From Oopsacas minuta (lineage: Eukaryota > Animalia > Porifera), in NCBI GenBank assembly GCA_024704765.1, contig JAKMXF010000033.1, forward strand, positions 558,001-622,000: a stretch of 64,000 nt of DNA, read 5' to 3'. Position numbers and translations under genes: made by a program. Positions 6,001 to 23,633 of this stretch are shown one piece after another (position 1 is the first letter of the stretch; each line of letters opens with the position of its first letter). The notes under the pieces are model-generated. The model was not told where the DNA came from. It saw only the letters and a program-made list of their open reading frames with translations, and searched no databases.

Positions 6001-8767
6001 AAAACAGAAATCTGATCAAACTTGTACAAATTTCGGTTCTGTTCAGCTCAATGAGAAGTCCTTACATACAGTTATACTGAATAATAACGGCCTATTTGCT
6101 TTTGACTATTTCTGGCGTTTATCTGAGAGATGCTTCAAAGCAGGAGGGAGTGAGAGTGAGGCAGGTCAGCTGGTTAACATCAACCCACAGAGCGGGAGGT
6201 TAGAGCCTCATACTTCTTGTCAGGCAGATCTATCTGTCTGTCCTACTGTCCCTATAAATCTAAAGGGTTGTAGCTTAGAATGTCATATCAAAGAAGGACC
6301 AACTTTCTCACTTGGTTTACTCGGGAAGGGTATCAAACCCTCTCTCTACTTCTCATTCACTAAATTTAACTTTGGGATGTGTTTCCTATACCATCCAGCT
6401 CTCCCATCTAACGTTACCACCCTGACCATAACTAATAACGAGGATAATCAAATCAGTCTAGATATACTTCCATTTACACTCCCTCACGTAATCATAAATT
6501 TCACTTCTATAATTCTTTCACCAGGAGCTAGTACTGAAGCAGAAATAACATTTTTGCCTCATGAGGCTGTTAAGTATCGTGACGTCATTGAGTTTAATAT
6601 TAATGGCATAACCAAACAACCAATTGAAATATTAGGACAAGGAACAGAGCTAAAATTAGAAGTTACAAAACCCCAGAAAAAATTGGTAAATTTCGGTGTT
6701 ATTCGAGTGAATGAGAAAGCTGACAAAACAGTTACAATCACTAATCTTGGTGCAGCAGCTGTTGAATTTAGCTTACAGCTGAAAGGCGGCACTCCTCCAG
6801 AAGTGTTAAAATTCACACCTTCTGAGAATATTTCTCTAAAACCTAATGGAGACAGTATTATCATAAATCTAACTTTCTGTCCCACATCAAGAATAGAACA
6901 ATTTACTGATGAGGTTCAATTCGAAGTTCTACGTCTCATCAAGCCTTTATTCATGGTATCGGGGTGTTGTCAAGATGTTGATATAAGACTAGCCACATCT
7001 CATATACCATTTGGACAGGTATGTCTCAATAGCAAGAGCTCCCGTCAGCTGCAGCTCTCTAACAAGGGAGATATCGGTGCGCATTTCAAATGGGACTTAG
7101 AAGCATTTAAACCGGATTTTACCATCACCCCCGTACAAGGCTACATCAGTCCTAAACTGGAAGTTATATTCTCAATAGAATTCTACCCCCAAGCCATCAA
7201 CAGTGATATCCGTTACGAGCATATTAAGTGTGAATTAGAAGGAACTAAGCCGCAGTACTTAACACTAACTGGTATGTGTAGTGATATACAACCTAAAGAG
7301 TCAATACAGTTTACTACACCAGTTCGTACCAGTGAATCTAAGCACCTGTCAATCAGTGTACCGAGAATTACCAATACAATTCACCTTAAGCCTAGTATAG
7401 ATGGTAACTCATGGTCAGGACCTGAGCTACTCACAATAGAACCTAATCAAACTAAAAACTACACGATCACATACCATCCGTTAGAGATGACGTCAGATCA
7501 CAGGAAACATGTAGGATCGATCTTCTTCCCCCTCCCTGAGGGGCAAGGACTTCTTTACAACCTGACGGGTGTCAGCGAGGCTCCGAAGCCGATAGACAGT
7601 CGCTCTGTAGACGTACCTTCTAAACTGAGACATACTGAATATCTCCCAGTAGCTAATTGGCTGACTACTAATCAAAGATTTAAAGTTTTTAGAGATATCT
7701 TAAAACCAGACCGTCCTGATATATCATTGTCTATTCAGGGTCAGGACTATATTGATGTACCAGGGAACTCTAAGAGAGAATACCAGTTACACTTCCACGC
7801 GTTTAAAGTAGGCACAACTTACATGCGGGTAACATTCAAGAACGAGGATACAGGAGAGTACTGTTTCTACTTACTAACGTTCAAGGCAGTATCAGCTGGT
7901 ACAATTGATGTTATTAATCTTGATACTACTGTCAGACAACGTGTTATACATACCATACGTGTGCATAACCCTCTACCAATACAAGTGAGTATATCCACTA
8001 ACTGCAGTCTGTATGATATCAGTCTACCGGCTCAATTTTTGGTTGGAGCACAGAGTGAAGGTACGTGTACTTTTGAGTACCTCCCTCTCAAATCTGGTGA
8101 GATATCTGGGGAAATATCTCTCACTAGTGCTGACCTCGGAATTTACCACTATACACTACATCTAACAGCACATCCTAGTCCTCCTGAACCTCCTGTAACA
8201 ATAGCAGGATATCTCGGCTCTACCACTGTACAGCCTGTTAGCTTTATTTCCTACGCTAAAGCTAACCGTATAGAGTACATTTGTAAGGTAGATCATTCAG
8301 ATTTTCATGTAGAGCGTACTGTACTAGCTGCTTCTGCAGCTGGAGGAATTGAGGTTCAAATAGATGTGAACTTTGAACCCTCTAGTCTGGGCACGATTAA
8401 CGCGATCCTCTCCGTATCCTCACAGTCAGGGGGAGAATATGTGATCCCTATCGTGGGAGAGTGTAACCTCCCCAATCCTCAGGGACCTTATGTTATAAAA
8501 GCAGGACACAGCGTGAATATTCCATTCAAAAATGTTTTCCCAGTTGCTGTTAATTATATTTACTCATTGGATAATCCTGCATTCCAATTCCGTGCTGTAG
8601 ATCAATTGAAGCCGAAGAAGAGCTATACAATAACAGTCACATTTGACCCGAAACAAGCAGATTCTTATGGCACAAATACTGGGAAACTTATAGCTAAATG
8701 TCCTCCAGGAAATGGAGACAGTCTCTCCAGTATTAGCTGGATATTCTACCTTAAAGGGATCATTTAA
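2..8767 (+). CDS. HYDIN: Hydin, axonemal central-pair apparatus protein; 5'-truncated by the window edge, one uninterrupted exon of >8.7 kb
   Basis: The frame is open from base 2 (EAILLSSTLLSEEDVVEIIMSR...) to the stop at 8767. Glu/Lys-rich coiled-coil region, then many ASH/Ig-like repeats with (D/N)FG motifs. The C-terminus WIFYLKGII resembles the HYDIN C-terminus. Confidence 0.93.
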   Translation, partial: EAILLSSTLLSEEDVVEIIMSRIHQNDCFPGMIFDSLDCSFLSDESQAARTVLKSIRHRELFYFVNLEFNPDAACEAKQLKEEEEAAKERELLASVSPVIDPALLEPELELSDEEGYELLSQERKDAINRAIAKKWRAEREKKRLEEEEKRRELELLEQKRLMEEEAKKKGGKKGQKSTFANLKDGSNENFKGLKQTPSVTSMAQQQQTPAPAPTSPTPSRPGSVTSGSTIRRAAKNAAIISKVIGLVDQAPPPEEDEMSALYTKYERHLLLARGVIELWDPVKMDTYSPPEPVQLQQDHEPVVSRQQKLKKDLKFKDLPSTGIDPMAELETLLQSKPENIGLSYYAINGVGTKEYIHVQICGLPCVPTPTELLDRLGIGPAGPRIPPPFELSMFNYPVYRQRPIPPEMERRFCFVALHPDDPNAIDTKLEEEELKKQQAISPIQEEEKDPPPQPPSRKSTISRASQESQKKTRDVSGKKSQRKKSQKEPRSSTPKGSVPLDESAASDDVITTPDTLVPVGPKKLIKHRWVIPGHGSTTLGIQFMSNEVGNYDETLHFEVMGTSRRYQLYCRGLCAVPGICTDPKVMFPACKPSRKIGEIIKKRFVLSQDLYDFGPLSYFRSRERRFQSKHPENMEDLTILNDSPLQANVTFKFKDDNNATTFLLEPPNLLLNPGEKGKLSIWAYPKHPHEFNDTLMCFIENNPKPVVFKIRAVCVKPELKLDRNDFKFDKVLLHRKESRQIFLKNPTLLPVSWKLATGERSVISESDADIYSFNQEQGIVEPLSEFALVCYFRSPRPTVIKKTLRLEVYSLDSTIGLLTNENLTLQVEAYDVALDISFPKGSEGKLEFHPVRIFEEAKQVCHVKNKGKYELHFQFDYETIKGVSMRNCFEVYPAKGALQAGEKAQPTTVIFNPKQAFNLSNVAAMRCHVIDPTYGEVIASIPIHVEAQAVFSEFKVHPVNDINFGPVVMNASGKQQKTLTIENTGLFEFRYNIIKLSSFMSRRGTGASRKAARSRLDDAPQGRTSAKALPKGKTGPSEQRLEGPQAPVKQNFGAFTLNPAHAIVQPGQSQQVTIECHPENIGFHEEKLIIDVTDKNPNPNPNPVTKSADMQYSLLCEACVPSIEKSIASICEEHRICKSLKSLSVGSLLLRGAGAGIFFEAEKIFRFNTIVVGRQMEARFRIQNTSKVPCDVICMPKGIGSPFKQMKGMGEVFEIEPSKLHLLPHSHKFVTVTFRPQAIQHYHYNFSVSLEGPGHLSRGMGLNFDLQGEGSLPQVAVLQPAATDRNGKPVMIFKRLVVGKTQYLPLVLSNIGSMSAMMSLKLDEQANEFTIKPIILPTSSPQPDPDLSVSGYGQHLVNLDPNDQCTFELCYSPRKPGEHCYSIILQVQDNPYEQTKILLLAESYVDEIIIDNIRGAHYSPQLAMSLDSSLLKPINENHLDFGNSAVGEEKQLVFCITNNSQDVFKIHFESILPSLTFTPSSAHLHGNRSKDILVTFKSDKAINHNRASVICKLQKIQLIDKDSIDWDDRMKVTRWVPVYTGKHQEEDRMSIVSGTHPPPTASGHSSTVHLIGHVPPSPIAVKRKRITEIEKEPAYQDIPSSSRQIELFITALADLPRVEPSVTDIHLKDTMMFQSRKYSFELRNVSQVTAHFEWLLESDMYPEPVPFEQDQTERFENLYLSITPATGDIPPQEHVNITLKFSPADVIQLQAKLLARIKNLPPASSDIEITLLGESVMPYCHFDLPTVSYSQLANTLDIKTSTTSYTTPLNSATRVLTFETCGVGVTVSRSFHVINPTNLTYDFVWQPDLKEDVRKPFICLTKTGSITGGKKFEMTFEFLPSTADYEECLWKFTIPSLALMVPLLFIGYIVEPKVLLDRTYLHFKPQLVSQVCRESVYMINDEDRAYTFSVREASCHMPGHQASLTVNPMSGTILPHSRLPILITLPLKKQAEHSFNLKIDVKHNAIPLLLNVKASSFLTDATLKVRNFAGDEIEIFPDTKQKSDQTCTNFGSVQLNEKSLHTVILNNNGLFAFDYFWRLSERCFKAGGSESEAGQLVNINPQSGRLEPHTSCQADLSVCPTVPINLKGCSLECHIKEGPTFSLGLLGKGIKPSLYFSFTKFNFGMCFLYHPALPSNVTTLTITNNEDNQISLDILPFTLPHVIINFTSIILSPGASTEAEITFLPHEAVKYRDVIEFNINGITKQPIEILGQGTELKLEVTKPQKKLVNFGVIRVNEKADKTVTITNLGAAAVEFSLQLKGGTPPEVLKFTPSENISLKPNGDSIIINLTFCPTSRIEQFTDEVQFEVLRLIKPLFMVSGCCQDVDIRLATSHIPFGQVCLNSKSSRQLQLSNKGDIGAHFKWDLEAFKPDFTITPVQGYISPKLEVIFSIEFYPQAINSDIRYEHIKCELEGTKPQYLTLTGMCSDIQPKESIQFTTPVRTSESKHLSISVPRITNTIHLKPSIDGNSWSGPELLTIEPNQTKNYTITYHPLEMTSDHRKHVGSIFFPLPEGQGLLYNLTGVSEAPKPIDSRSVDVPSKLRHTEYLPVANWLTTNQRFKVFRDILKPDRPDISLSIQGQDYIDVPGNSKREYQLHFHAFKVGTTYMRVTFKNEDTGEYCFYLLTFKAVSAGTIDVINLDTTVRQRVIHTIRVHNPLPIQVSISTNCSLYDISLPAQFLVGAQSEGTCTFEYLPLKSGEISGEISLTSADLGIYHYTLHLTAHPSPPEPPVTIAGYLGSTTVQPVSFISYAKANRIEYICKVDHSDFHVERTVLAASAAGGIEVQIDVNFEPSSLGTINAILSVSSQSGGEYVIPIVGECNLPNPQGPYVIKAGHSVNIPFKNVFPVAVNYIYSLDNPAFQFRAVDQLKPKKSYTITVTFDPKQADSYGTNTGKLIAKCPPGNGDSLSSISWIFYLKGII

Positions 8768-9116: not shown

Positions 9117-10985
9117 TTATTTACAACACTTGAATAATTTCCCGAAGAAATTCTTCCAAAAGTAGTAGTTGGCCTTGGAGGGAAGTGTAACAATGAATAT
9201 ACAAATGATTAGAATTCTAATTAGAAACGCTTCAGCTATAAATAGCCATCCAGGATGAATAGTGTTAGTCTTATCAACCACGTAACATTTGTGTTCATAC
9301 TTATTTATGGCGTCATTTGTTCCGAACAGTGACTTGAAGGCATCTAATAGTGTATCGTATTCCTCTAGTTTATTATTCCGGTAGATAGATGATGGTCTTT
9401 GTGAGGTAAGACATTTGAACTCATCGGTGTATATCGCGAACAAATTCCCTTGGTAGATTATAATATACAATATGAGCCCGATTAGTAACGCCAGGCATAG
9501 CAGGAACATTATAATAGCATACAGCATTATCCTGTATTGCAATCCAGTCAACTTCGTACTGTTCGTCTTCAATTTCTCACTCCGTATGAAGTCCCATTTA
9601 ATCCTCGCTACAATGAGTGGAGTTAGTGTGAGTATACCGAGTGAAGAAGCGAATAATGGTATGAAGTATAGTATCAAACTAGGGAGAGATTCATCAATAT
9701 TATCACTGTCTGATACGATTAACCAAATGTATATTGACATGTAAGGACGACCATCTCTTAATGCTAAAGATCCTATGACGAATAGGATAGGAATAACGAT
9801 TGATATCACTAACTCCGTTACAATTATGCCGATTCGTATTTTATTATTTGCTTTGAGTTGAAGTGGATACATTAAGGTAAGGAGGAGGTTGAGTAATGTG
9901 AAGTTAACCCAGGAGTAAAATGCGAATATTCCAAAATGGAACAATGCTCCATACACGTTAAGTAGTATCAAATCAGATTGCGTATTATACTGCTTCTGAT
10001 AGGTAACAGATGGATCTGGTAAGTCAAATATAACCAACAGGACTACACAGAAAGATGCGAATGAATAGAGGAATAATATACTCGGCGCCAGTAGAGCCTC
10101 GAAGAACTTTCCTAATTTAGTCTGCCTTACTGCTAGTGTATTCTTATCAACGAAAAATGTTTTCAATAGAAAAGTAGTCAATGATAAAATGCTCGATATA
10201 AATCCGATAATGGCAATGCAAGCGTTTCCAATACGCATTGCAAACCGTCCTGCTTTCCCTGAAGGATGCCAATGGTGTACTATAAACCCATCCGGAACAC
10301 AGAATTGTTGTAAAGTATCAAATTCATATCCTTCTGGACATTCTACGTTCACTCCGAATACAATTCTTTCAAGTTTTATATCGTTATCGATCATTCCAGT
10401 TGTTGTGATGTTCAATATACTCACATTGCTTTTGTAGAAACGATCTTCATTCGAGAATGAAACATTTGAGAAATCAAACAGCAAATATTCCTCTGTTACA
10501 ACCAAATTAGGAGTAGCAAGTAGGATAGGGGCTAGGTAGGCAATGATGCTTCCTTCATTCGTACAATTCGTTTCATTACAATTGTTCATGGACAAGTTGA
10601 ATTTTCCGTTGTTTAAATCGTTAAGATAAATCTCATAAAGTTTGTAGATTTGTGAATCATTATTCACGAGTTGGCTCAAGAATATGTACACTATTGGCAA
10701 ATCATTAGACGACTTTGTTAAAGTCATGTTGAAATTTGAGTCACTAGAAATTTCACTTGGTTCTATTTGTTGATCCAGTAAGAAAATCGTACCTCCAGCT
10801 GCGATAAAGCTACTCCAGATTGTGACAACGACAATTATTGTTAGTACGGTTACGATAATTTTCTTACATAGAGTACTGCAACACTTCTTCTTTCTACCAG
10901 ATACATTTGTAATATTTATGATGTTGAAATCTTCCCGATGATTATCTCGGTTTGATAAAATCATAGCTTGCGGTGTCTCGCACAT
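9117..10985 (-). CDS. Multi-pass membrane receptor, Frizzled/Smoothened (class F)-like 7TM with an extra N-terminal TM and no obvious CRD, 622 aa
   Basis: One hydrophobic helix near the N-terminus, an N-glycosylation-rich ectodomain, then about 7 TM helices. Long Cys-containing loop before the last helix. Post-TM7 segment LPSKANYYFWKNF resembles the Fz/Smo K-x-x-x-x-W region. Confidence 0.6.
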   Translation of the reverse strand: MCETPQAMILSNRDNHREDFNIINITNVSGRKKKCCSTLCKKIIVTVLTIIVVVTIWSSFIAAGGTIFLLDQQIEPSEISSDSNFNMTLTKSSNDLPIVYIFLSQLVNNDSQIYKLYEIYLNDLNNGKFNLSMNNCNETNCTNEGSIIAYLAPILLATPNLVVTEEYLLFDFSNVSFSNEDRFYKSNVSILNITTTGMIDNDIKLERIVFGVNVECPEGYEFDTLQQFCVPDGFIVHHWHPSGKAGRFAMRIGNACIAIIGFISSILSLTTFLLKTFFVDKNTLAVRQTKLGKFFEALLAPSILFLYSFASFCVVLLVIFDLPDPSVTYQKQYNTQSDLILLNVYGALFHFGIFAFYSWVNFTLLNLLLTLMYPLQLKANNKIRIGIIVTELVISIVIPILFVIGSLALRDGRPYMSIYIWLIVSDSDNIDESLPSLILYFIPLFASSLGILTLTPLIVARIKWDFIRSEKLKTNSTKLTGLQYRIMLYAIIMFLLCLALLIGLILYIIIYQGNLFAIYTDEFKCLTSQRPSSIYRNNKLEEYDTLLDAFKSLFGTNDAINKYEHKCYVVDKTNTIHPGWLFIAEAFLIRILIICIFIVTLPSKANYYFWKNFFGKLFKCCK

Positions 10986-11759
10986 TTCTTGAAATTGTAT
11001 CGTTTGGAAATATATTTAGTTTGGAGATCTTTGTATTTCTATTTATAAGGTTTAACATATATTTTTCTCTGTATTACCTAGAATGATTGCGTCCGTTCGT
11101 TTATACGTAATTGTTGAGATCAGCTTCTGGGCAGATATATTATTTTGAAGTAAATGCTGACATGTTCATGTTATGTATCCTGGTTTATTTCCAAGAAATT
11201 AGCTCAATTTAGTATGAACTGTAGTAATTGTAATCGAGAAGTACTGGATTTGGCTAATATATTTCTACTTTCAAAATGAACACTTAGTCATTGCAAATAC
11301 TCACAAATAAGCTGATGACAAATGCTGGTATACTAACAGCTAAGTGTCCTGCCGTAATTCGAGTCAGTATTGCGGATATTAGGATGGATGATCTAATAGT
11401 TAAAGTCTCACGGGCTACCACGATTACTATTCATAATCAAATTATATGGCAATTTCATTCATATATTTGAATATTAATTCGGAAAAGGTCTAATTGTTAT
11501 AGATATCCTACTTGTATGGGAGTAATGCAGCATGTGACTTTAGGTTATTGAGTCACAATTAATAGCAAGGTTCACTATATCATAATCTTAGGGTGCATTT
11601 ATATTATAAGAGAAATTCGGGCCAATGGACCATTATCTTGCTTACATTTCCCATTCACTACTCTAAGTTATCATTTAACATAAAACATACATTGAGTTAT
11701 ATATTACAGAAACATACTAAAATTATCTACATGGAATTCATGTATCCTCTCCACTTCAC

Positions 11760-13009
11760 TTACATATCAGTTCTTTTGCAACACACCGATAATTTCAAGT
11801 AGAAGTTCTTCCAAACGTAGTAATTGGACTTGGAGGGAAGTGTAACAATGAACATACAAATGATTAGAATTCTAATTAGAAACGCTTCAGTTATAAATAG
11901 TCATCCAGGATGAATAGTGTTAGTCTTATCAACCACGTAACATTGGTGTATGCACTGATTTATGACGTCATTTGTTCCAAACATTGACCTAAATGCATCT
12001 AATAGTGTATCGTACTCCTCTAGCCTATCATTCCGGTAGATAGATGATGGTCTTTGTGAAGTGAGACAACCGAACTCATCATAGTACACAGCAAACAAAT
12101 TACTTTGATATATCGTAATGTATAGTATTAGCCCGATTAGTAACGCTGCCCATAAGATGAACATTGAAATAGCATACAGTATTATCCTGTATTGCAATCC
12201 TGTTACCTTTGTCGGTTTGTTTGGCTTTATCTCTTCATCTTGTAACGAATCCCATTAAATTCTAGACACGATGAGTGGAGTTAGTGTGAGTATACCGAGT
12301 GAAGAAGCGAATAATGGTATGAAGTATAGTATCAAACTAGGGAGAGATTCATCAATATTATCACTGTCTGATACGATTAACCAAATGTATATTGACATGT
12401 AAGGACGACCATCTCTTAATGCTAAAGATCCTATGACGAATAGGATAGGAATAACGATTGATATCACTAACTCCGTTACAATAATACTGACTCGTGCTTT
12501 TAGCTTAAGTCGATATGATTTTAGTAAGTAGGAGATTGAGTAGCGTGAAGTTAACCCAGAAGAAAAATCCAAAAATACTGAAATGAAACAAGGCTCCATA
12601 CAGGTTAAGTAATATCAAATCTGATTGTGTAGTGTACTGCTTCTGGTAGGTAACAGAAGGATCTGGTAAATCAAATATGAACAACAAGACAACACAGAAG
12701 GATGCGAATGAATAGAGGAATAACAGACTCGGTGATCATAATGTTTCGAAGAACTTTCCAAATCTAGATTGATCTACTGTTTGTAGTCTTACCACCGGAG
12801 ATCTGTTGGTCCAATATGAACACGATACCTCCACCTGCGAAAAGCTAACCCATATAATGACAATAACAATTATCGTCAGTACTATTGAATATTTTCTTAC
12901 ATCTAGTACTGTAATATTTCTTCCCGGGTATATATGTATCCTCTATTATTTCGAATTCTGCCTTCCCCGAGTCAGGCAAAATCATTGATTGAGATCCACT
13001 CTCGCACAT
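11760..13009 (-). pseudogene. Decayed tandem paralog of the 9117-10985 receptor
   Basis: Colinear homology with the intact copy. TGG>TGA at 11901-11903, AAA>TAA at 12255-12257, frameshifts near 12510 and 12900. A large internal deletion joins DQQI (about aa 73) to the FGKFFE region (about aa 290). Confidence 0.88.
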
Positions 13010-13203
13010 TTCTTGAGCTTGTATCGATTTAATTGTAATAGGTAAATTACTTTCTATCTTAACTTCATTTCTATGAGAGTAACTTAGTACATATATATCA
13101 ATTCGTTTAAACGTAATGTTGAGGGTTGGCGCCAACTGGCCAGATATACTACGGATAGCATTATATATATATTCCTAATAAATTAGCTCTAGCTCTGTAT
13201 CAA

Positions 13204-16200
13204 ATGAACTGTGGTAGTTGTAATTCACAATTACTGAATATTGACTCTCTATGTTTCTACTATCAAAATGAACATTCAGTCAGTCTCATTGTCAAACATG
13301 AACAGTATGTAATTCAAGTGAAGAATTTTCTTGAAGTAGGTGAGTCTAGAAGAAAAAGTATTGCATGTCCGAACTGTCGTAACGTTGTTGGGAAAAAAGT
13401 TCCCGCAGGCCCGAATAATACAATGTTTTTGGCATTTGGAAATGAGAAAGTGATTGTTTTCAATAGACAACTTGATAAGAAAAAACAACCATGGAGTCTT
13501 GTTTACAAACTTCCACCTTATAACGTCATTAAAATTCGTACGGATGCTACATTTTTCGGATCGCCCAAACTTCCAAAAAATGTAACTAGTCCAATACGAA
13601 CTCCTGTAGCATCAAATATACAGAGAATAAACTTTGCTAGTAACATCCAAGACTTTCTTTATACTGACTTACTCGCTTCAGATGTTATTCCTAGGAATTA
13701 TCAAATAGAGGCATACGTAGAGGCTCTACAACAAGATTTATTAATAGTTATACCCACTGGCTCAGGTAAGACATTAATAGCTACTATCGTAGCCGCAAGG
13801 ATGAAGTTATTAAATCCAGATTTAATGATACTATTCTTAGCTGAACGAGTTCCACTGGTTTTCCAACAGGGAGATTCTATTAGTTTTGATACGCACTTGG
13901 CTGTGTGTTGTCTTAGTAGTGAAAATAAAACTGCAAAGATACTTCGTGAATTGCAAGCAGGTGAATACGACATATTGGTAGCAACTGCTGGAGCTTATGT
14001 TAACTTGGAGAAAGAATTAGGAATAGATAGGTTTTCATGTGTTATATTTGATGAGTGTCATCACGCTACAAAGGCTCATAATTACGTGAGAGTTTTAGAT
14101 AAGATAAGAGAACGTCCCGGCTACAGACCTCGTGTAATTGGACTAACTGCCTCTCCTCCATCAGTTAAAGGGGACTATAGAGGTACTCAGAACATTTTGG
14201 ATGAAATCAGAAGAATATTTTTCAATGCCTCAATATACTACAACAAAGATCTAGAAATCAGTGCTTATGTCGATACATCCATCGAGTACAGAATAGTACC
14301 AGTAACTACAGACAAATATTTCTCAGAATACACACGAATACTTTGTGAAGAACTGAAAAAGATGGCAACATTAATTAATAAATTGATAGGCTACAATGCA
14401 ATTAGAATTGAAGATTGGGGTAATTCGAAAGGTAGACTCCAGTTAATTAACATGTTAAGTCATTTGGGTAACAGCTGTCAAGACAGGATTAACAATATGT
14501 TTAAGTCCATGAGATTAATATGTACAGCTTTGGATGTAACAGAAATATTAGGAGTTACCTATGCGAATACTATCTTAAAAAACTTAGACATATACAAAAC
14601 ACTTGGAAATTCTCAATATTTATCTCCTCGACTGTTATCTTTGCTAGAACTGCTGCATGATTTACCTAGCGAATCAAAAATAATAGTATTTGCACGAACA
14701 AGACAGATAGCTCAGATATTGTGTACAATGCTCAAGGATTATGAACTGATTAATACTAAGTTTTCTCCACTAAAGATAGTTGGTCAATACGGGTCATTGG
14801 GGATGGGTTGGGATTCTGAGCAAAAGGAGATTTTAGAGAAATTCCGTCACGGTAATTGCAATTTATTAGTCAGTACTTCTGTCTTAGAAGAAGGACTAGA
14901 TGTTCCTGAATGCAAATATGTAATTAGGTTCGATGGAATTACGTCACTGACTTCTTTCAAACAGAGCAAAGGTAGAGCCAGGAAACATGAAGGCAGATTC
15001 ATAATGATTCTTTCTGATGAAGAAATTGCAATGTTTAATGACATATTAGCTAGCGAAGCTATCGTACGTAGTGTCCTAGAAGGACAATATTCCATTAACC
15101 CCATCCCTACTTCTAAGACTTTAAAGATATTGCAGGACATACAACAATTAAATCCACCTAAAAACACCCCTAATAACATTGATAATCTACTGGACTCAAC
15201 AGAGTGTGTAGTAGAGTTCTATATAACTGGTAGCCAAAGGATAACAGATTTACAGGAATTTATCTGTGATTTTCTTAAGGAAAGATATTTTCTAACAGTC
15301 AAACATATTGATAAAGCGACAAACAACGCTGAATGGAAGTCAAAAGGCATTTTTCCATCATCAAATACAATGCTTACCCTGGGACTACAATCTCAACACA
15401 ATATATTTCAAATTTACAAGAAACTGATAATAGATTGGGACTTTACATTGAATTCTACACATACACGTGTGTGGAGTAGAATACTAATTCCACCAAAGAA
15501 GGAACCTCTTAGGATACCAACATGGCGTGTTAAGTCAATCCGATGGGGAAATTTTATTAATGCATTTGCATTCCAATCAGCCATGGAATATCTTCCAGAA
15601 AATGCAACCTTAATTTTCCAATTCGATGAATCTTCAAATTTTAAAGGAGAATCTGAAAAATGTATACTTATTGAGATTTTCCCTGATTATGTCATAAAGA
15701 TTTATCTATACATAATGCATAGATTTATATTAGCTCATTGGTCCGGTGAATATGTAACCCTGTATCTGCCTTTGAACAGTAGTCCAATAGTTCTAAGTGG
15801 TGATGGTGAAGGATTGCAAAGATACACTTCAAAAGATTGCGACTATTTATCTTGGTTTGGACTATGTCCTGTAGTTGGAATTACGTTATCGTATTCTAAA
15901 GCTAGTTGGAGTCAATTGATGTCATTCTTGCATTCATCTAACCATTTCCATGTTCTTGTGTTTGATTCACGCATTTCAGTTGTATCAACATCGACTATAG
16001 ATCTAATTCCTTCTCATTTTAAATGCCAGTCTAAAGAGATACAAGATTGCACGTGGGCTTTGTCTGTACTGAAATGCAACCGTGATGTTTGTGTACCTGA
16101 TGATTCAATTACTTATCTGTATCAACGAATAGGAAATTCATTTGTATACTCCACCATAGCATTATGGCGTATTATTGTCACTATTTCCAACCCCAAAACA

Positions 16201-19200
16201 CCCTACTTTGTAGAATTAATTGTAGAGATTCAAAAACAACTCCAGTATGTTAAAGATAAGAATATTTCACTGCCCCTAATCCCCCCCAATTTTAAAGAAT
16301 TAGAATGCGCTATGTTGACTCCATCTCGTGTAATTTGTCTACAACCTATCCTCACTCAGTCAAATAGATTATTCAGGCAATATCCAAATGAACGATTCTT
16401 AAATCTAGCTTTTCGAGAAGAACAAGGTCAGCCTCTGCAAGGTAAAGCTATAATAGCATTTGTTAAGAGTACAATACAGCATGGTATTAATATAGAGGGA
16501 AATATGTTTTATTTTCTGCTATGTAGTGGAAGTCAGATGAGGTCTAAACATGCAATATTCATACAAATACAAAATTCTATGTCAGCTCAGGAAAAAATTA
16601 ACCAAATTCGTCTTGAATTACTCGGTAACTCAAAGATTTCTATAGAATCTAAGTATTTATCTAGGCTAGGGCTCTTTTGTACATCTGATCATCCAATTTG
16701 TACAATCAACGAATACCAAACATGTTCCTTGCCCGATCTGCTTGCGAGAAATGGATTAATGTTAACAGACGGTGCTGGTAAAATTTCGAGATTATTAGCT
16801 GATCAAGTCATAGATAGATTAAATGAAGAGAATAATACATTTCATAATATAGGAAAGCCTTCTGCATTTCAAATCAGACTGGCTGGACTGAAAGGAGTAC
16901 TAACTATTGTTGATGAAAATACTGATGTTGATTTTCAACGTGTTGGTCCTTTTTGTAGAATTATCTACAGGGAATCCATGAAAAAGATAAATTGGACACA
17001 TTCTACCCTCTGTATTGTAAGGTATGCGAAATATAGCGAATGCTTTCTGAACATGCAAGCTATTAATCTCATAACTTCACTACAACATCCTATTTGGGAT
17101 CCTAATGTTCGGATTAAGTCTATATTTGAAGATTATCTTAGAGAAATTGGCTTAATGTTCACTGACGAGAAAATAGCAGATGAAGAATTAATTAATAATC
17201 TTGCAAATTACTATGAACGAACTATTGAATATTTTGATATTTTGACTGAGCCTTATTATGTATCTTTACTCCGCTGTATCTACGGTTACAAGGTTAAAAC
17301 TTTGATTGAAAAGTTTCGCATTCCAGTTAAGCATGGCTGTTTGCTAATGGGAATTCCGGATCCAATTGGTGTGTTACGTGATGGAGAGGTATATGTCAGT
17401 TTTCAAAACAAATCTCAGATATGTACACTGAATGGACGAATTCTAGTTTATAAAAACCCGTGCTTGCATCCTGGTGACCTATTGACCCCCACAGCTGTTG
17501 ATGTACCTAGCTTAGGCCATCTAATAAATGTGATTGTGTTTCCTATTTGTGGTAAGACATCTCTCCCAGCCTGTTCGGGAGGCTCAGATCTGGACGGTGA
17601 TGAATTCTCTATTATATGGGATCGTGCCCTCATCCCTCCACAATCTGCTATCGTAAAACCATTAAACTATGCTGATGTATTGAAAAATGCAACTGATTTA
17701 CAGAATATGATTGACGAAGAGTATTTAGACCAGACTGGTTTGGAGTTACTCAGAGATACTACAGATTGTTGTGATGATCCGTTTGCACCGAATTATACTG
17801 GTGACGAGGTTCAACAATTACCTTATAATCCTATAACTACAGAATGCTCTACCCTAATTCATAACGATCCTGCTATTCAAAAGAGACTATCAGAAGCTTA
17901 TTATAGAATTATCAGTAATGACTCACTCGGTATAATCTGTCATTACCATATGTCTATCTCTGATCAAAAACCTACTGGAGCATGTGACCCATTATCTATT
18001 GAGTTAGCCAAAGCAGCATCAATTGCAGTAGATTCTCCTAAAACAGGTATCTTACCAAGAATACCGAAAGAAGCTGTAAAACTAATTAGAGAGAAGGGAT
18101 ATCCTGATTTTATGGATAAAGTTCAATCGCCTTCCTACCCATCTTCTAAATTAATGGGAGAATTATATCGAATGGCTAAATCAACTTGTTACCAAACATC
18201 TCAATGGACGAACATTACTAAGTTTCATAAGAAGTATGATTTAACAGGAAGAATCCCTGGAAACCGCTATTTTGGGTATCTTATGGTTAGAGACTTCAAG
18301 AAGTACATGAGAGATGCTAAATTGATGTACCATGAGTATTCTAATGCACTACAGAGGATAATGATGTCATTTGGTGTCGAAACGGAGGCTGAAGCAATCA
18401 TGGGATTAATAATTAATTGTCATCCCCTTCTATCAGCTGATAAAGGGAAGATAACTACGTCACTACGTACAGCTGTTGAATACCTACTTGATGAATTCCG
18501 TGAGAAATTCTACCGGGATACTCCTCAATGCGATCTCCATGCTAAAGCATCAGCATGGTATATGGCTGCATACCAGCAGAAAGGAGAAGTGTTTCTATCG
18601 TTCCCGTGGATAATCGTTTCTTTACTTTGCGAAATTGTACCGAAACGACGAATTGGTAATATTTCCTTTTTGTATAGTAATGTAGGGCAATCAGCGAAGG
18701 AATATATTTGCAAAAATAGCGATTATGTTAAATCTATTGTGAGATCGAAATTGTGTGTATTGTCAGTAATAGAATCTTGTATCAATAATTACATGCGAAA
18801 GCTGTATCCATCTTTTCCTAATACGAAATTTTTCGAAATAACTGCATTCGGATCTGTCTCAGTGTATGTATGTGTGCCGCAGTCTGATTTGGATTTGTCT
18901 ATTTCTCTTACCGAAGATTCTTATAGAATAATATCCCAAACTGCTGGATTTATGAATTTGTCATTTAATGAAAAACGTAAACATATATTGCATACATTTA
19001 TTTACCCTTCTGTCAGTGAGATTGCAAACAAACATCATTGTAAACTCAACGCTGAAATACCTTTTATTTCTATAACAATTGATCCTGCAGAAGAAGGCGG
19101 TTCGGAAATAGAAATTGACCTAGTAATACAAAGTGATGGCGTCCTAAAATCAGAATATCTACGAAAGCTCTATATTGAAACACATGGGAAATTCTTTGGT

Positions 19201-21054
19201 TGGTTATGGATTATAGTGCATTGGGCGAGACATGTAGGAATCCTAAAATTTTATAGTACACAAGAAAACACAGGGATTATCAAAACTGCAGAATTCGAAG
19301 CACTAGCACTCTTTATTTATAATAAAATGTCAAACAAACGAAAAGATCAAAGCCCCCTTACTGATGCTTCGTTAGACAACATTATGGACTCTATAATGAG
19401 TATTGATATTGATAGCATACTGGGTAAAATGTTAGAGGAATTTTTCTGTTTAGGAGCTGAAATCACGAAGAATAGTAATGATATAGTTTATACATGGCCT
19501 GTTGAAGGTCTACCGACACATACTATCGAGAAGGAAGCTCTGAAGGAGATAAATATTCTACTATTCCAAGCTTGGCACTGTTTAATATTCACACAAAATA
19601 TCTCAAAATTATTTGACACAAATCTATGTAACAGTGAAACTTTAAGGAAAAGATTTTCAACCTACATCAGTGAACAGATCCGCCAGTCTACAGAATTTTA
19701 TAGGGCATTATTAGAGAAACAAACAGGTGCATCTATCTCTTTTCAACAAGTAGGGCGTAATGTCTTACTTATAGCTAGAGGATCCGCTAAATCAATTCAC
19801 GACCTGAACATAGAACTAAACTTAATTGAGAAAAACACATTGACAACAAGCTTCAGGACACATGCTTGTTATTATATGTTACAAGGATGTATGGCCCTAG
19901 TCATGTGTAATCAGACACATTCCACTAGAGTGGAATTAAAACCTTACAATTACATGTACAAATTACATCATAATTATAATGAGAGATCAAATGTAGTTAT
20001 AGCAGATAAGCCACATATTGTTAATCCCAATTGGCAGCAAAATTGTATTAACAGATTAAAAAATCTAATGTGGAATCAGTTAACACATTTTCCCGAGGAA
20101 GACACTGAATTGCTAGAAACTCTGCAGTTAAAAACTAGGTTTGGTTATTTCTACATTTTAGATGGAGCAAAAGCTTTCGAGTTAGTGGGTGGATCTCTTT
20201 ATTTGGATGAATTAGAAAAATGTTTATTGAATGATAAGAAATTCCCTAAACACTTATTGAGTAATTACGGTGGAGATTCTAATCCAAACAAATCACAACC
20301 AAATGCCTCAAAAAAGCCTCCTAATTTCGGTAAACAAAAAAAGCAGAGACCTAAATCCATTAGTAGTGCATTTTGTCCTGGAATATATTCAGGAGGTCGT
20401 AGTGATATGTGCTGTGTAGAGAATGCACAATTAGTATATAAGAAAGCTCTCAAGGATTGTGGATATAAATTCAGTCATTCTAACGCTCCTTGGGTATGGA
20501 GAATTGATGTCAAAGGAACTTCTAAAAGAGATTTACATATTGATTTCAATGAGAAATTTGAAATAGTCCAGATAGGCGAGCGTCCATTTATTTGGATGTT
20601 AGCTACGATTATTGGGGATAGAGCAACTGAGGCTATGCCTCAGAAAATACATGATATCAGAGTACGCGTTGAAAGTTATGTGATATTGAAGAGGGACTCG
20701 GAATTATTCACTCATATTCTTCCTAACAGAGTAATGACCCCACTCTTGTCATTAGGAACAGATGGTTCACCTATCATTAATAAGAACCTTAAAAAGCGTC
20801 TTAAATTAATTATCCACCACACATCTGTCCAATTCTACTCACTAGGTGATACTATTGCTAAGATCTGTACAGGAATAGAGTACAGTGGTGATAATATACA
20901 GAGATGTAGAAGGTTCTGTGAGCTGTCCCTGTATCATAATGGAACAAAGCTCCGAGAGGTAATTGCATCAGGATGTGATATTAATGAAGTACACTCTATT
21001 GCTGCTGAAGCAATACGTAATTCTCTCAATGTTTCTCGTGCTCTTTATTCATAA
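13204..21054 (+). CDS. Helicase-RdRP-nucleotidyltransferase fusion protein (RNAi-type RNA-dependent RNA polymerase), 2616 aa, intronless
   Basis: SF2 Dicer/RIG-I-type helicase motifs PTGSGKT (13753), DECH (14050), GLTASP, STSVLEEGLDVP and QSKGRAR (14962). Cellular RdRP motifs LTDGAGKIS, FQIRLAGLKG, KNPCLHPGD and SGGSDLDGDEF (DLDGD at 17587-17601). Pol-beta NTase motif FGS-x10-DLD (18847-18894) plus a third Asp in EIEIDL. Confidence 0.92.
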   Translation: MNCGSCNSQLLNIDSLCFYYQNEHSVSLIVKHEQYVIQVKNFLEVGESRRKSIACPNCRNVVGKKVPAGPNNTMFLAFGNEKVIVFNRQLDKKKQPWSLVYKLPPYNVIKIRTDATFFGSPKLPKNVTSPIRTPVASNIQRINFASNIQDFLYTDLLASDVIPRNYQIEAYVEALQQDLLIVIPTGSGKTLIATIVAARMKLLNPDLMILFLAERVPLVFQQGDSISFDTHLAVCCLSSENKTAKILRELQAGEYDILVATAGAYVNLEKELGIDRFSCVIFDECHHATKAHNYVRVLDKIRERPGYRPRVIGLTASPPSVKGDYRGTQNILDEIRRIFFNASIYYNKDLEISAYVDTSIEYRIVPVTTDKYFSEYTRILCEELKKMATLINKLIGYNAIRIEDWGNSKGRLQLINMLSHLGNSCQDRINNMFKSMRLICTALDVTEILGVTYANTILKNLDIYKTLGNSQYLSPRLLSLLELLHDLPSESKIIVFARTRQIAQILCTMLKDYELINTKFSPLKIVGQYGSLGMGWDSEQKEILEKFRHGNCNLLVSTSVLEEGLDVPECKYVIRFDGITSLTSFKQSKGRARKHEGRFIMILSDEEIAMFNDILASEAIVRSVLEGQYSINPIPTSKTLKILQDIQQLNPPKNTPNNIDNLLDSTECVVEFYITGSQRITDLQEFICDFLKERYFLTVKHIDKATNNAEWKSKGIFPSSNTMLTLGLQSQHNIFQIYKKLIIDWDFTLNSTHTRVWSRILIPPKKEPLRIPTWRVKSIRWGNFINAFAFQSAMEYLPENATLIFQFDESSNFKGESEKCILIEIFPDYVIKIYLYIMHRFILAHWSGEYVTLYLPLNSSPIVLSGDGEGLQRYTSKDCDYLSWFGLCPVVGITLSYSKASWSQLMSFLHSSNHFHVLVFDSRISVVSTSTIDLIPSHFKCQSKEIQDCTWALSVLKCNRDVCVPDDSITYLYQRIGNSFVYSTIALWRIIVTISNPKTPYFVELIVEIQKQLQYVKDKNISLPLIPPNFKELECAMLTPSRVICLQPILTQSNRLFRQYPNERFLNLAFREEQGQPLQGKAIIAFVKSTIQHGINIEGNMFYFLLCSGSQMRSKHAIFIQIQNSMSAQEKINQIRLELLGNSKISIESKYLSRLGLFCTSDHPICTINEYQTCSLPDLLARNGLMLTDGAGKISRLLADQVIDRLNEENNTFHNIGKPSAFQIRLAGLKGVLTIVDENTDVDFQRVGPFCRIIYRESMKKINWTHSTLCIVRYAKYSECFLNMQAINLITSLQHPIWDPNVRIKSIFEDYLREIGLMFTDEKIADEELINNLANYYERTIEYFDILTEPYYVSLLRCIYGYKVKTLIEKFRIPVKHGCLLMGIPDPIGVLRDGEVYVSFQNKSQICTLNGRILVYKNPCLHPGDLLTPTAVDVPSLGHLINVIVFPICGKTSLPACSGGSDLDGDEFSIIWDRALIPPQSAIVKPLNYADVLKNATDLQNMIDEEYLDQTGLELLRDTTDCCDDPFAPNYTGDEVQQLPYNPITTECSTLIHNDPAIQKRLSEAYYRIISNDSLGIICHYHMSISDQKPTGACDPLSIELAKAASIAVDSPKTGILPRIPKEAVKLIREKGYPDFMDKVQSPSYPSSKLMGELYRMAKSTCYQTSQWTNITKFHKKYDLTGRIPGNRYFGYLMVRDFKKYMRDAKLMYHEYSNALQRIMMSFGVETEAEAIMGLIINCHPLLSADKGKITTSLRTAVEYLLDEFREKFYRDTPQCDLHAKASAWYMAAYQQKGEVFLSFPWIIVSLLCEIVPKRRIGNISFLYSNVGQSAKEYICKNSDYVKSIVRSKLCVLSVIESCINNYMRKLYPSFPNTKFFEITAFGSVSVYVCVPQSDLDLSISLTEDSYRIISQTAGFMNLSFNEKRKHILHTFIYPSVSEIANKHHCKLNAEIPFISITIDPAEEGGSEIEIDLVIQSDGVLKSEYLRKLYIETHGKFFGWLWIIVHWARHVGILKFYSTQENTGIIKTAEFEALALFIYNKMSNKRKDQSPLTDASLDNIMDSIMSIDIDSILGKMLEEFFCLGAEITKNSNDIVYTWPVEGLPTHTIEKEALKEINILLFQAWHCLIFTQNISKLFDTNLCNSETLRKRFSTYISEQIRQSTEFYRALLEKQTGASISFQQVGRNVLLIARGSAKSIHDLNIELNLIEKNTLTTSFRTHACYYMLQGCMALVMCNQTHSTRVELKPYNYMYKLHHNYNERSNVVIADKPHIVNPNWQQNCINRLKNLMWNQLTHFPEEDTELLETLQLKTRFGYFYILDGAKAFELVGGSLYLDELEKCLLNDKKFPKHLLSNYGGDSNPNKSQPNASKKPPNFGKQKKQRPKSISSAFCPGIYSGGRSDMCCVENAQLVYKKALKDCGYKFSHSNAPWVWRIDVKGTSKRDLHIDFNEKFEIVQIGERPFIWMLATIIGDRATEAMPQKIHDIRVRVESYVILKRDSELFTHILPNRVMTPLLSLGTDGSPIINKNLKKRLKLIIHHTSVQFYSLGDTIAKICTGIEYSGDNIQRCRRFCELSLYHNGTKLREVIASGCDINEVHSIAAEAIRNSLNVSRALYS

Positions 21055-21698
21055 TATGTAGCTTACCTATTTATTGAATTTTTATATTATCTTTTTACAT
21101 GTGACAGAATTCTTATGGCCATATATTTTCTATATAATTATTTATGTATTTTACTATAATATCCCTGGACGGTTGACAGGTGTGTTAGTGATATTATTTC
21201 GATTCACTAAATGTTAGTATTCCCACCACAACTACAGTGTAACCTCTACAAGTGGGGTCTCTATAAACGGGGAACCTCGGCAATTTTGGTACATATTTTG
21301 TTCATTTCCTAGAAACGAACCTCGATATGTGGGGAATGGGGGATACTTTAATAGCAGCGATACCTTACACCATTAAAATCAACCTCTATAAGTGGGGAAT
21401 TTTCCAATAAAGTTCATTGAAATTTCTATTTTTGTGAAAAATATTCATTTAAGCAAGCATCCCTATGATAATTTGAAATAGTTTGATTTCTAGGAATAAT
21501 TTTTCTCCAAATTATTCCTATCTTGGATGTCTAAACATCAAAAATCATTGAAGGCGCTGTCATTGGAAGAAGTAGCTATACAAAATACGATATAGGCCAT
21601 GCGTGTTTAGAATGCTATGGTCACGGCTTTATGGGTAGGCATATATTGATTAATAGTAATATCAACGTATTTCACTGGTTTAAAGTTTCTACGATAAA

Positions 21699-23633
21699 AT
21701 GGGGAAGAGATTATTGACTTCCTTTATCACAGGTATCCTGCTAGCGTGGGCTTGTTCATGTAGCCAAGCATTTCTAGTCTTCTTCCCGTCAGCTTATATA
21801 CTATTTGGAGGCTGGCCTATTGTGTGGCGAATCAAGCAAACTCTTCGGAGAGATCTACAACTAGCCGGGTTCTATTCGAAGCTAAGGAAAGCCGAACAGT
21901 TGAATAAAAAGAATAATGTAACTTACCATATGAAATGGCAAAAAACAGTCGACAAACAGCCGAACAAAGTAGCAATAAGATTCCAAGATGAAGAGTGGAC
22001 GTATATCCGTATTGTATCCCTAGCTAATAAAATAGCAAACTATCTATCCTCTAATTCCAATTTAGATGTTGGTGACACAGTTGCTCTGGTTGCAGAGAAC
22101 TGTCCTGAGTACATAGTTGTATTGCTAGCTCTTTCCAAGCTAGGCTGTCCCGCTGCACTTATAAACTTTAATCTCAGCGGTAAGCAGTTGTTACATACGA
22201 TTGAAATCTCATCCAGTAAGGTAGTAATCGTTACGAGCACTCTCAGTCATAATGTTAAGCAAATTGAAGGAGATTTGAACACAGACATAGTCTATTATTC
22301 CCTGAATAGAAAAGAGTGTGATTCAATTTACAAAGATATCATCCAACTCTGTCATGATTCTCCAGTTACATCACCAACAGGTAGAGACAGCAAAATAACT
22401 CCATTGTCAACTCTATGCTATATCTACACATCTGGAACAACTGGACTCCCAAAAGCCTGCATTATCACTCATGCTAAAGCTGTTACGATTGGAGTTGTAT
22501 TCAATATAATATCAGAAGCTGTTGAATCGGATATTTTCTATGTTACCCTGCCGTTGTACCACACAAGTGGTCTCATTATTGCCACAGGGACGGTGGTAAA
22601 TGCAGGATGTTCTATGTACCTCAAATCTAAATTTAGTGCTAGTGAATTCTGGGATGATTGCGTCATGCATAATTGTACAGTCATCATCTATATAGGCGAA
22701 TTATGTCGTTATCTCCTTTTACAGCCGAGTAGACCTTCTGATACGAATCATAGGGTTACAAGAGCAATCGGTAACGGACTTCGGACTGGAATATGGCAAG
22801 ATTTCAGAGACAGATTTCTGATCACCAGGATTCTAGAGGTGTATGGGTCAACTGAAGGTTTTTCTGGCCTAATGAACCTTGTATCTGAACCCGGTTATAT
22901 TGGTTATTTACCAATCTCTCTGAAGGATGTTCCCCTATTACGTGCATTATATAACCTTACGTTTGTGGCCAGAATAGATCCAGAGACAGGAGATATTGTC
23001 AGGGGAGCTGATGGACTATGTATTCGCTGTGAAGTCAATGAGTCAGGCGAGGCCCTTGGCATGGTCCGTGTGGGAGAGAAAAAGATGGTTATGTATCTAT
23101 CCCAAGAAGCTACGAAGAAAACTATGGTCAGGAACGTAGTCACTCATGGTGACTTATACTGTAGGACAGGCGATATTATGTCTGCTAATGAGCTAGGGTT
23201 CCTAACATTTCTGGATCGAAGAGGTGATACATTTCGTTGGAAAGGTGAAAATGTTAGTACAAGCGAAGTAGAATCTATCTTTGCAGCTATCATAGATCAT
23301 GATGACGTAATAGTTTATTCTGTAGCTATACCTGGTATCGAGGGTCGAGCTGGAATGGCAGCTATTGTTAAGAAGCACTTAGACTTGGACAATTTGTTAG
23401 ACAGCTTGAAAAGGGACCTACCTTCCTATTCTGTCCCTCTGTTTATTCGATTGATAGCTGCTCCTAAACTTACAGCTACATACAAGTATAGTAAAATCGG
23501 CTTAAAGAGAGAGGGCTTTGATATTAATACTATTACTGATCCGGTATTCTTTCTAGATCCCAGGTGTAAGAAGTATGTGCCTCTTGATAACGAGGTGTTT
23601 AGCTTACTGATGGAGAGAAAGTTGAGGTTATGA
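21699..23633 (+). CDS. Long-chain fatty acid transport protein / very-long-chain acyl-CoA synthetase (SLC27A/FATP family)
   Basis: AMP-binding motif YIYTSGTTGLPK, FATP motif GDLYCRTGDI...FLDRRGDTFRWKGENVSTSEVE, GIEGRAGMAAI, N-terminal TM segment. Confidence 0.95.
   Translation: MGKRLLTSFITGILLAWACSCSQAFLVFFPSAYILFGGWPIVWRIKQTLRRDLQLAGFYSKLRKAEQLNKKNNVTYHMKWQKTVDKQPNKVAIRFQDEEWTYIRIVSLANKIANYLSSNSNLDVGDTVALVAENCPEYIVVLLALSKLGCPAALINFNLSGKQLLHTIEISSSKVVIVTSTLSHNVKQIEGDLNTDIVYYSLNRKECDSIYKDIIQLCHDSPVTSPTGRDSKITPLSTLCYIYTSGTTGLPKACIITHAKAVTIGVVFNIISEAVESDIFYVTLPLYHTSGLIIATGTVVNAGCSMYLKSKFSASEFWDDCVMHNCTVIIYIGELCRYLLLQPSRPSDTNHRVTRAIGNGLRTGIWQDFRDRFLITRILEVYGSTEGFSGLMNLVSEPGYIGYLPISLKDVPLLRALYNLTFVARIDPETGDIVRGADGLCIRCEVNESGEALGMVRVGEKKMVMYLSQEATKKTMVRNVVTHGDLYCRTGDIMSANELGFLTFLDRRGDTFRWKGENVSTSEVESIFAAIIDHDDVIVYSVAIPGIEGRAGMAAIVKKHLDLDNLLDSLKRDLPSYSVPLFIRLIAAPKLTATYKYSKIGLKREGFDINTITDPVFFLDPRCKKYVPLDNEVFSLLMERKLRL

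Follow-up and report, generated by a model that had tools for sequence, protein, structure and literature searches.

A helicase, RNA-dependent RNA polymerase and terminal nucleotidyltransferase on one chain in the glass sponge Oopsacas minuta: a probable self-contained counterpart of the fission-yeast RDRC

Results

Domain organisation of the gene

A stretch of 64,000 nucleotides from the glass sponge Oopsacas minuta (assembly GCA_024704765.1, contig JAKMXF010000033.1, positions 558,001 to 622,000 of the forward strand; hereafter 'the window') was analysed around a gene for a putative RNA-dependent RNA polymerase (RdRP). The region from 13204 to 21054 on the plus strand formed one stop-free open reading frame (ORF) of 2616 codons, set in gene-dense, intron-poor surroundings of ~36% G+C; its features are collected in Table 1. 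A first-pass annotation made from the sequence had described an uninterrupted 2616-aa ORF that combined a complete Dicer/RIG-I-type helicase, an RdRP with an intact DLDGD motif at aa 1462 and a pol-beta nucleotidyltransferase (NTase), lacked RNase III and belonged to a basal animal. The length was confirmed by the ORF listing, the quoted motifs were found in place and the host was supported; the domain claims are taken up below. Folds were examined in two AlphaFold models built from alignments of 15-16 glass-sponge homologues, while statements of invariance refer to full-length alignments of 12-15 relatives from animals, alveolates, euglenozoans, stramenopiles, a fungus and a plant.

Table 1. 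Features of the RdRP gene in the window (all on the plus strand)
Feature	Residues	Window coordinates	Strand	Remarks
Spliced-leader trans-splice acceptor AG, probable		13185..13186	+	X1 contig with non-genomic leader; mature mRNA would begin at 13187, 17 nt before ATG 13204
Complete coding sequence	2616 aa + stop	13204..21054	+	Introns: none detected
N-terminal zinc beta-tent module	1-118	13204..13557	+	CxxC at 3/6 and 55/58; resembles RIG-I-like-receptor C-terminal domains and Yippee
RIG-I-like-receptor/Dicer-type DExH helicase	~161-650	13684..15153	+	Pfam, Foldseek, motifs; helical insertion between two RecA lobes
Middle region	651-1037	15154..16314	+	Alpha/beta and beta-rich domains (model secondary structure)
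Eukaryotic RdRP	1038-1817	16315..18654	+	PF05183; catalytic DLDGD 17587-17601
Cid1/TUTase/GLD-2-type terminal nucleotidyltransferase	1818-2139	18655..19620	+	GS 18850-18855, DLD 18886-18894, third Asp 19117-19119
C-terminal module	2147-2616	19642..21051	+	Small KH-like alpha/beta unit, then triphosphate-tunnel-like beta-barrel; without sequence family

The helicase was recognised by Pfam in two parts (ResIII/DEAD at aa 163-319 and Helicase_C at aa 480-592). When the N-terminal model (aa 1-1038; mean predicted local distance difference test score, pLDDT, 75) was compared with known structures by Foldseek, it matched the helicases of MDA5, LGP2, RIG-I, DRH-1 and Dicer (E ~1e-25, template modelling (TM) score ~0.6 normalised on the target), and for this reason the label 'Dicer/RIG-I-type' was correct. 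Motifs I (GxGKT), II (DECH) and VI (QxxGRAR) were invariant in the relatives, and the helices at aa 371-486 sat between the RecA lobes in the model. The Foldseek alignments to Dicers extended to about aa 800-900. No Pfam match was obtained for the middle region (aa 651-1037), which, judging from the model, probably comprises a Dicer-like post-helicase part followed by the N-terminal part of the RdRP. The Pfam scan of the protein detected no RNase III family, in agreement with the first-pass annotation, and no CARD, Death or TIR signalling domain.

At the N-terminus, the four cysteines of the zinc module (3/6 and 55/58) were conserved and the model had a pLDDT of 70-90. All Pfam matches here were sub-threshold, comprising RIG-I_C-RD in 10 of 24 family members (best E 2.3e-5) and Yippee-Mis18 in 16 of 24, while the best match among PDB sequences was a weak one to the C-terminal domain of C. 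elegans DRH-3 (E 0.055). The first 118 residues were read as a putative zinc beta-tent of the kind seen in Yippee and in the C-terminal domains (CTD) of RIG-I-like receptors (RLR).

The polymerase was identified by PF05183 at aa 1038-1657 (E 6e-118), its DLDGD (aa 1462-1466) being invariant among the relatives, and its C-terminal tail matched Arabidopsis RDR2 (E 3e-6) when the profile of alignment A1 was searched against PDB sequences. Beyond it lay the NTase signature, consisting of FGS-x10-DLD at aa 1882-1897 (GS at 1883-84, DLD at 1895-97) and a third carboxylate, D1972. The model had the bilobal fold of these enzymes, with a catalytic palm and a central (poly(A) polymerase-associated) domain, over the very segment (aa 1870-2110) where a different fold would have spoken against the initial assignment; together with the motif positions and the invariance of GS 1883-84, D1895, D1897 and D1972 across the relatives, this upheld the pol-beta NTase. 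The homologous segments of Hydra, dinoflagellate, liverwort and acoel proteins scored 41-50 bits, over the Pfam cut-off, and those of Diplonema and Prorocentrum fell below it (four above, of six relatives scanned). PF03828 was not detected in the window protein by Pfam, and a feature search of the ESM Atlas returned NTase clusters only, with a score (0.81) under the tool's reliable level. The tailing enzyme is apparently active.

The C-terminal module

The last 470 residues were modelled as a triphosphate-tunnel fold, as found in trypanosome RESC1/2 and yeast Cet1, and the model contained the eight-stranded antiparallel beta-barrel that forms the tunnel. Conserved charged residues alternated along the barrel strands (HD-x-R at 2483-2486, R2312 and E2573). 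The best structural match among the AlphaFold models of Swiss-Prot was Q10338 (E 3.8e-7), which a published supplementary table identifies as the fission-yeast RNA interference (RNAi) protein Dsh1. The structure-search matches also included fly Trf4-2, named in Swiss-Prot as an inactive non-canonical poly(A) polymerase. In sequence, the A1 profile matched PDB entries only in the RdRP tail (RDR2) and, marginally, in CutA.

The first ~70 residues of the module had a beta-alpha-alpha-beta-beta-alpha topology in the model. This segment (window 19642-19850, aa ~2147-2215), lying between the NTase and the barrel, showed type-I KH topology and carried a 'TGAxIxI' motif. Its neighbours in the ESM Atlas were an oomycete KH protein and plant DUF7903 proteins (TM 0.61-0.66 by hit), and a KH profile search of the segment produced no match. 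Given the topology and these neighbours, a KH-like unit may precede the barrel.

Family distribution and paralogy

When 1.84 billion cluster representatives were searched with a profile of the last 837 residues, only 228 proteins were retrieved, many of them 2000-2900 aa long and matching at their C-terminus. Named members came from animals (two loci in Hydra, Hydractinia, the jellyfish Rhopilema and the acoel Convolutriloba), dinoflagellates (Effrenium, Prorocentrum and Symbiodinium), diplonemids (Diplonema and Sulcionema), oomycetes (Pythium, Plasmopara, where the protein is called 'RDR1', and Aphanomyces), the chytrid Phlyctochytrium, the liverwort Riccia and the green alga Tetraselmis. Short stand-alone matches in this search were mostly unnamed metagenome or transcriptome fragments, with one from Tetraselmis. 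All six named relatives scanned with Pfam possessed helicase, RdRP and NTase, and the helicase preceded the RdRP in the Hydra, Plasmopara and Pythium proteins as it does here. Alignments A4 and A5, which included these three genera, were collinear, with profile scores above 1000 bits; in total, more than 25 full-length collinear homologues of 2550-2740 aa were found in independent assemblies and phyla. The Dictyostelium Rrp proteins were not among the matches of two word-indexed profile searches, probably because 5-mers in common were lacking.

A quick maximum-likelihood tree placed the 28 glass-sponge proteins in one clade, divided into at least six paralogue groups; the deeper order of the tree was unreliable, as it contained long-branch rows. 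The four Oopsacas proteins, namely the window protein and three paralogues that NCBI lists as 'RNA-dependent RNA polymerase 1-like [Oopsacas minuta]', fell in separate groups, and the window protein was placed with P0002-P0005. One further relative, P0001 (ENA, 1926 aa, 60-61% identity), begins in the middle region and has neither zinc module nor helicase, being either a gene model cut short or a variant naturally devoid of the helicase.

These results showed that the protein belongs to an old, widespread and biochemically unstudied family of eukaryotic helicase-RdRPs rather than being an invention of sponges. The first-pass annotation had known of no helicase-RdRP that also carries an NTase. 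A claim of novelty on this ground was unsupported, because the architecture is ancient and widespread, occurring in Hydra, Hydractinia, jellyfish, acoel, dinoflagellates, diplonemids, oomycetes, chytrid and liverwort, and because the helicase-RdRP core has been published. Helicase-RdRPs of oomycetes, Dictyostelium, Hydra and Nematostella have been described, their helicases forming one clade, without mention of the NTase (Bollmann et al. 2016, PMC4791657). One figure legend notes that two amoebozoan RdRPs have a poly(A) polymerase-type NTase domain, PAP_NTPase (bioRxiv 10.1101/2023.10.19.562841), and beyond that legend the literature search returned nothing on a helicase, RdRP and NTase fusion, a single-polypeptide RDRC or an RdRP-linked triphosphate tunnel. 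The architecture is widespread but not characterised, which is half of what the first-pass annotation had named as telling against its view. Among other sponges, the demosponge Amphimedon lacks an RdRP according to one survey (Calcino et al. 2018, PMC6211395).

Transcript evidence and genomic context

The sequence was present in four public runs, all from one sample. Three were DNA-like, with Nextera adaptors and even depth over genes and spacers, and a 107-kb contig from one of these (X2) covered 16400-22399 unbroken. The fourth run, X1, had TruSeq adaptors, depth that stepped at gene borders and zero coverage at 11000-11599 and 13050-13184. Two overlapping, joint-free X1 contigs (13185-14363 and 14334-21758) spanned the whole ORF. 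The contig starting at 13185 was preceded by 22 non-genomic letters, AAATTCTTCATAAAAAACTTAC, a sequence that was absent from the window when searched for. The next gene showed the end of the same leader in front of 21729, the genomic sequence there being ACAG (21729-21732); at both sites ...CTTACAG was joined at a genomic AG. From its depth steps and leader-bearing contigs, X1 was probably an RNA library, and the joining of one leader at an AG before two neighbouring genes looks like spliced-leader trans-splicing, a process reported for hexactinellids.

The closest homologue, P0004, was about 60% identical and came from a second glass-sponge assembly (locus L001), where its neighbours were the same: a HYDIN-like gene, a gene without Pfam family, the RdRP gene, a gene for an AMP-binding enzyme and an ERCC4 gene, in that order. 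Conservation was measured as identity per domain, synonymous sites being saturated at ~60% protein identity, and was spread evenly along the chain (58% in the beta-tent, 66% in the helicase, 67% in the RdRP, 63% in the NTase and 58% in the tunnel module). Neither flanking repeats nor transposase genes were found around the RdRP gene. The gene was interpreted as an intact host gene that is probably expressed.

Several neighbouring features were recorded. An uninterrupted 2902-aa ORF at window 59-8767 contains Ig-like (ASH) repeats of the HYDIN/CFAP65 type, and its orthologue is the synteny anchor upstream of the RdRP gene in L001. Between the HYDIN-like and RdRP genes, both assemblies have an ORF of ~620-650 aa without Pfam family (window 9117-10985 on the minus strand; L001 3702-5648). 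At window 11800-12500, the X1 word depth reached ~16,000, or ~100x that of neighbouring genes, while the DNA-like runs rose only 2-3-fold, suggesting either a small gene with very high expression or a repeat. Minus-strand ORFs at 11901-12197 and 12255-12599 resemble small membrane proteins, and an Rfam scan of the upstream region (10900-13300) gave no match. Downstream, the AMP-binding enzyme ORF (window 21699-23633) opens with an ATG at 21699 and has its apparent trans-splice acceptor (21731-32) inside the ORF, where X1 depth rises about threefold; the true start codon is therefore probably further downstream. Finally, a 1233-aa ORF on the minus strand (51507-55211) combines, in Pfam, a GTPase domain (MMR_HSR1), a MACPF domain and a Hedgehog-type Hint module.

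Discussion

The domains and their folds, the intact catalytic residues, the conservation and synteny of the gene and its continuous transcript-like coverage were directly established. They are best understood, and this is considered likely, if the gene encodes a self-contained counterpart of the RNA-directed RNA polymerase complex (RDRC) of fission yeast, that is, of Rdp1, Hrr1 and Cid12, possibly with Dsh1, within an ancient helicase-RdRP family. The reading is preferred because the domain set equals that of RDRC, with Dsh1-like and RLR-CTD-like modules besides. In such a protein, the beta-tent and helicase would engage a target RNA or duplex end and translocate on it, the RdRP would synthesise the complementary strand, and the NTase would add untemplated nucleotides to a 3' end, either of the template or of the product. 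The tunnel module would hold, or possibly hydrolyse, a 5'-triphosphate end, for example that of RdRP products started de novo. The output would be double-stranded RNA (dsRNA) or small-RNA precursors that silence viruses or transposons. In this scheme, as in the first-pass proposal that the protein recognises an RNA, tails its 3' end and copies it in cis, the enzymatic activities, substrates, step order and biological target are inferred.

Several points weigh against this interpretation. The C-terminal model is moderately confident overall (mean pLDDT 63, with 75-92 in the barrel), the TM values of its Dsh1 match are low (0.24/0.33), and searches for a sequence link between the module and any family returned noise only, both in Pfam (21 family members, E <= 1) and when its profile was compared with PDB sequences. 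The two-glutamate ExE(K) strand is not conserved, the corresponding strand of the family reading FCELSL with one conserved Glu (E2573). The NTase of the window protein scores just under the Pfam threshold (MTPAP-like_central at aa 1858-1989, 26.2 bits against a cut-off of 27), and kinship with the Dictyostelium Rrp proteins rests on the literature. With regard to expression, no library type is recorded for X1 and contigs are unable to prove one single mRNA molecule, so that the transcript evidence is supportive rather than decisive. The first-pass view of a single transcript, which separate transcripts would contradict, was not refuted: contigs run continuously over the ORF, and the architecture recurs in a syntenic orthologue.

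Hydrolysis by the tunnel is doubtful because a clear two-glutamate strand is missing, and with neither this pair nor any match in Pfam or PDB sequences the module was not filed as a Cet1-family triphosphatase; only the fold is shared. Of the two, binding of a 5' end is preferred to its hydrolysis, though with low confidence. A wider proposition may be attached tentatively, as one with only a modest chance of being right. The family would represent an ancestral one-chain RdRP complex that was split in fission yeast into Rdp1, Hrr1, Cid12 and Dsh1, the last being an orphaned KH-like and tunnel module, and the editing TUTases of kinetoplastids, with RESC1/2, would descend from the same pair of NTase and tunnel. 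The tunnel would act on the 5'-triphosphate of the newly started strand, by gripping or trimming it, while the NTase tails a 3' end, and one molecule would define both ends of a silencing RNA.

A rival reading concerns the target. The protein could be mainly a cytosolic antiviral sensor-effector, whose helicase and CTD-like module detect viral dsRNA or 5'-triphosphate RNA that the polymerase and NTase then modify or mark, with the multigene expansion in glass sponges as the product of an arms race. The helicase fits MDA5, LGP2 and RIG-I no less closely than Dicer, the N-terminal module resembles RLR C-terminal domains, and diversification of the kind seen in the glass-sponge clade, with its six or more paralogue groups, is frequent among families of immune genes. 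However, CARD, Death and TIR domains are absent from the Pfam scan, and published relatives act in the silencing of transposons and transgenes (PMC3950715, PMC4791657). A sensor of this kind would differ from a one-chain RDRC in its target and not in its chemistry, and the two proposals overlap; as the main role of the protein, sensing was judged unlikely.

It was judged more doubtful still that the NTase and tunnel module are pseudoenzymes, that is, non-catalytic scaffolds that position RNA or partners for the helicase-RdRP core. The absence of a conserved ExE(K) strand would fit this, as would the closest structural matches of the tunnel, RESC1/2, which come from RNA-binding complexes and are not enzymes; fly Trf4-2, by its Swiss-Prot name, shows that inactive family members exist, and the window NTase is just sub-threshold in Pfam. 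Yet the NTase keeps its GS and its three carboxylates unchanged from sponges to oomycetes and a liverwort, a constancy that is difficult to account for without catalysis, and the charged residues of the tunnel strands (HD-x-R, E2573 and R2312) are conserved. That the long ORF is an artefact of genes fused in assembly, or was carried by a transposon or virus, is scarcely credible: the gene is intronless and multi-copy, and the 1926-aa P0001 lacks the helicase, but the collinear homologues in independent assemblies and phyla, the synteny kept in another glass sponge, the 107-kb X2 contig that spans 16400-22399 in one piece, the host-type leader at the 5' end and the lack of flanking repeats or transposase genes all oppose it. 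Synteny, phylogeny and the continuity of the contigs were the grounds for rejecting misassembly and a transposon or virus.

The family offers a compact, single-protein system for work on the coupling between RNA copying, 3' tailing and the handling of 5' ends. What is known of RdRP-based silencing in animals comes almost wholly from nematodes. Glass sponges have kept and multiplied an ancient, complete helicase-RdRP-NTase enzyme, which they share with cnidarians, an acoel and many protists. The searchable literature does not treat the family's C-terminal half, with its apparently active tailing enzyme and Dsh1/RESC1/2-like tunnel module. The interest of the gene lies chiefly in that half, which is essentially undescribed and may be linked to Dsh1 and to the RESC/TUTase machinery of kinetoplastids: the NTase had been noticed only in passing, and no paper was found on the tunnel module or on the reading of the protein as a one-chain RDRC. 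Should the links to Dsh1 and RESC be true, three RNA pathways that are now treated separately would become connected.

Comparison with known systems

The nearest published relatives are the RDR-gamma-type proteins of Hydra, Nematostella, peronosporomycete oomycetes (RDR1) and Dictyostelium (RrpA/B/C) (PMC4791657), which, like the window protein, have an N-terminal DExH helicase and Helicase_C followed by a PF05183 RdRP. Hydra LOC105846402 and Plasmopara 'RDR1' are collinear with it over the full length, including the NTase and C-terminal module, whereas the published descriptions end at helicase and RdRP and leave the NTase, tunnel-like and N-terminal zinc modules undiscussed. In the glass-sponge lineage the gene has expanded to at least six paralogue groups.

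Two silencing systems unite the same activities in separate proteins. Fission-yeast RDRC, with an RdRP (Rdp1), an SF2 helicase (Hrr1) and a Cid1-family NTase (Cid12), has the same set, and its partner Dsh1 is the best Swiss-Prot structural match of the C-terminal module, a likeness that is structural only; RDRC is built of subunits, whereas the sponge protein is one polypeptide with an RLR/Dicer-type helicase. The RdRP module of C. elegans (EGO-1 or RRF-1, DRH-3 and RDE-3/MUT-2) likewise brings together a Dicer-related helicase, an RdRP and an NTase, in the synthesis of secondary small interfering RNAs. Its components are separate proteins, the nematode RdRPs in the search output being without helicase or NTase Pfam domains. 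Among PDB sequences, the zinc module of the sponge protein has its best match in the C-terminal domain of DRH-3.

The remaining likenesses concern the C-terminal half. The RNA 5'-triphosphatases Cet1, Pct1 and CTL1 differ in their metal-binding ExE(K) strand, which is not conserved in the window family (ELSL, with a single Glu), and no sequence match to PF02940 or to triphosphatases in PDB was obtained. In trypanosomes, the TUTases RET1, RET2 and MEAT1 and the pair RESC1-RESC2, which binds guide RNA, are separate proteins of the kinetoplastid mitochondrion, in a system with no RdRP, and sequence identity is 8-16%; common ancestry with these RNA-editing proteins is put forward as a hypothesis.

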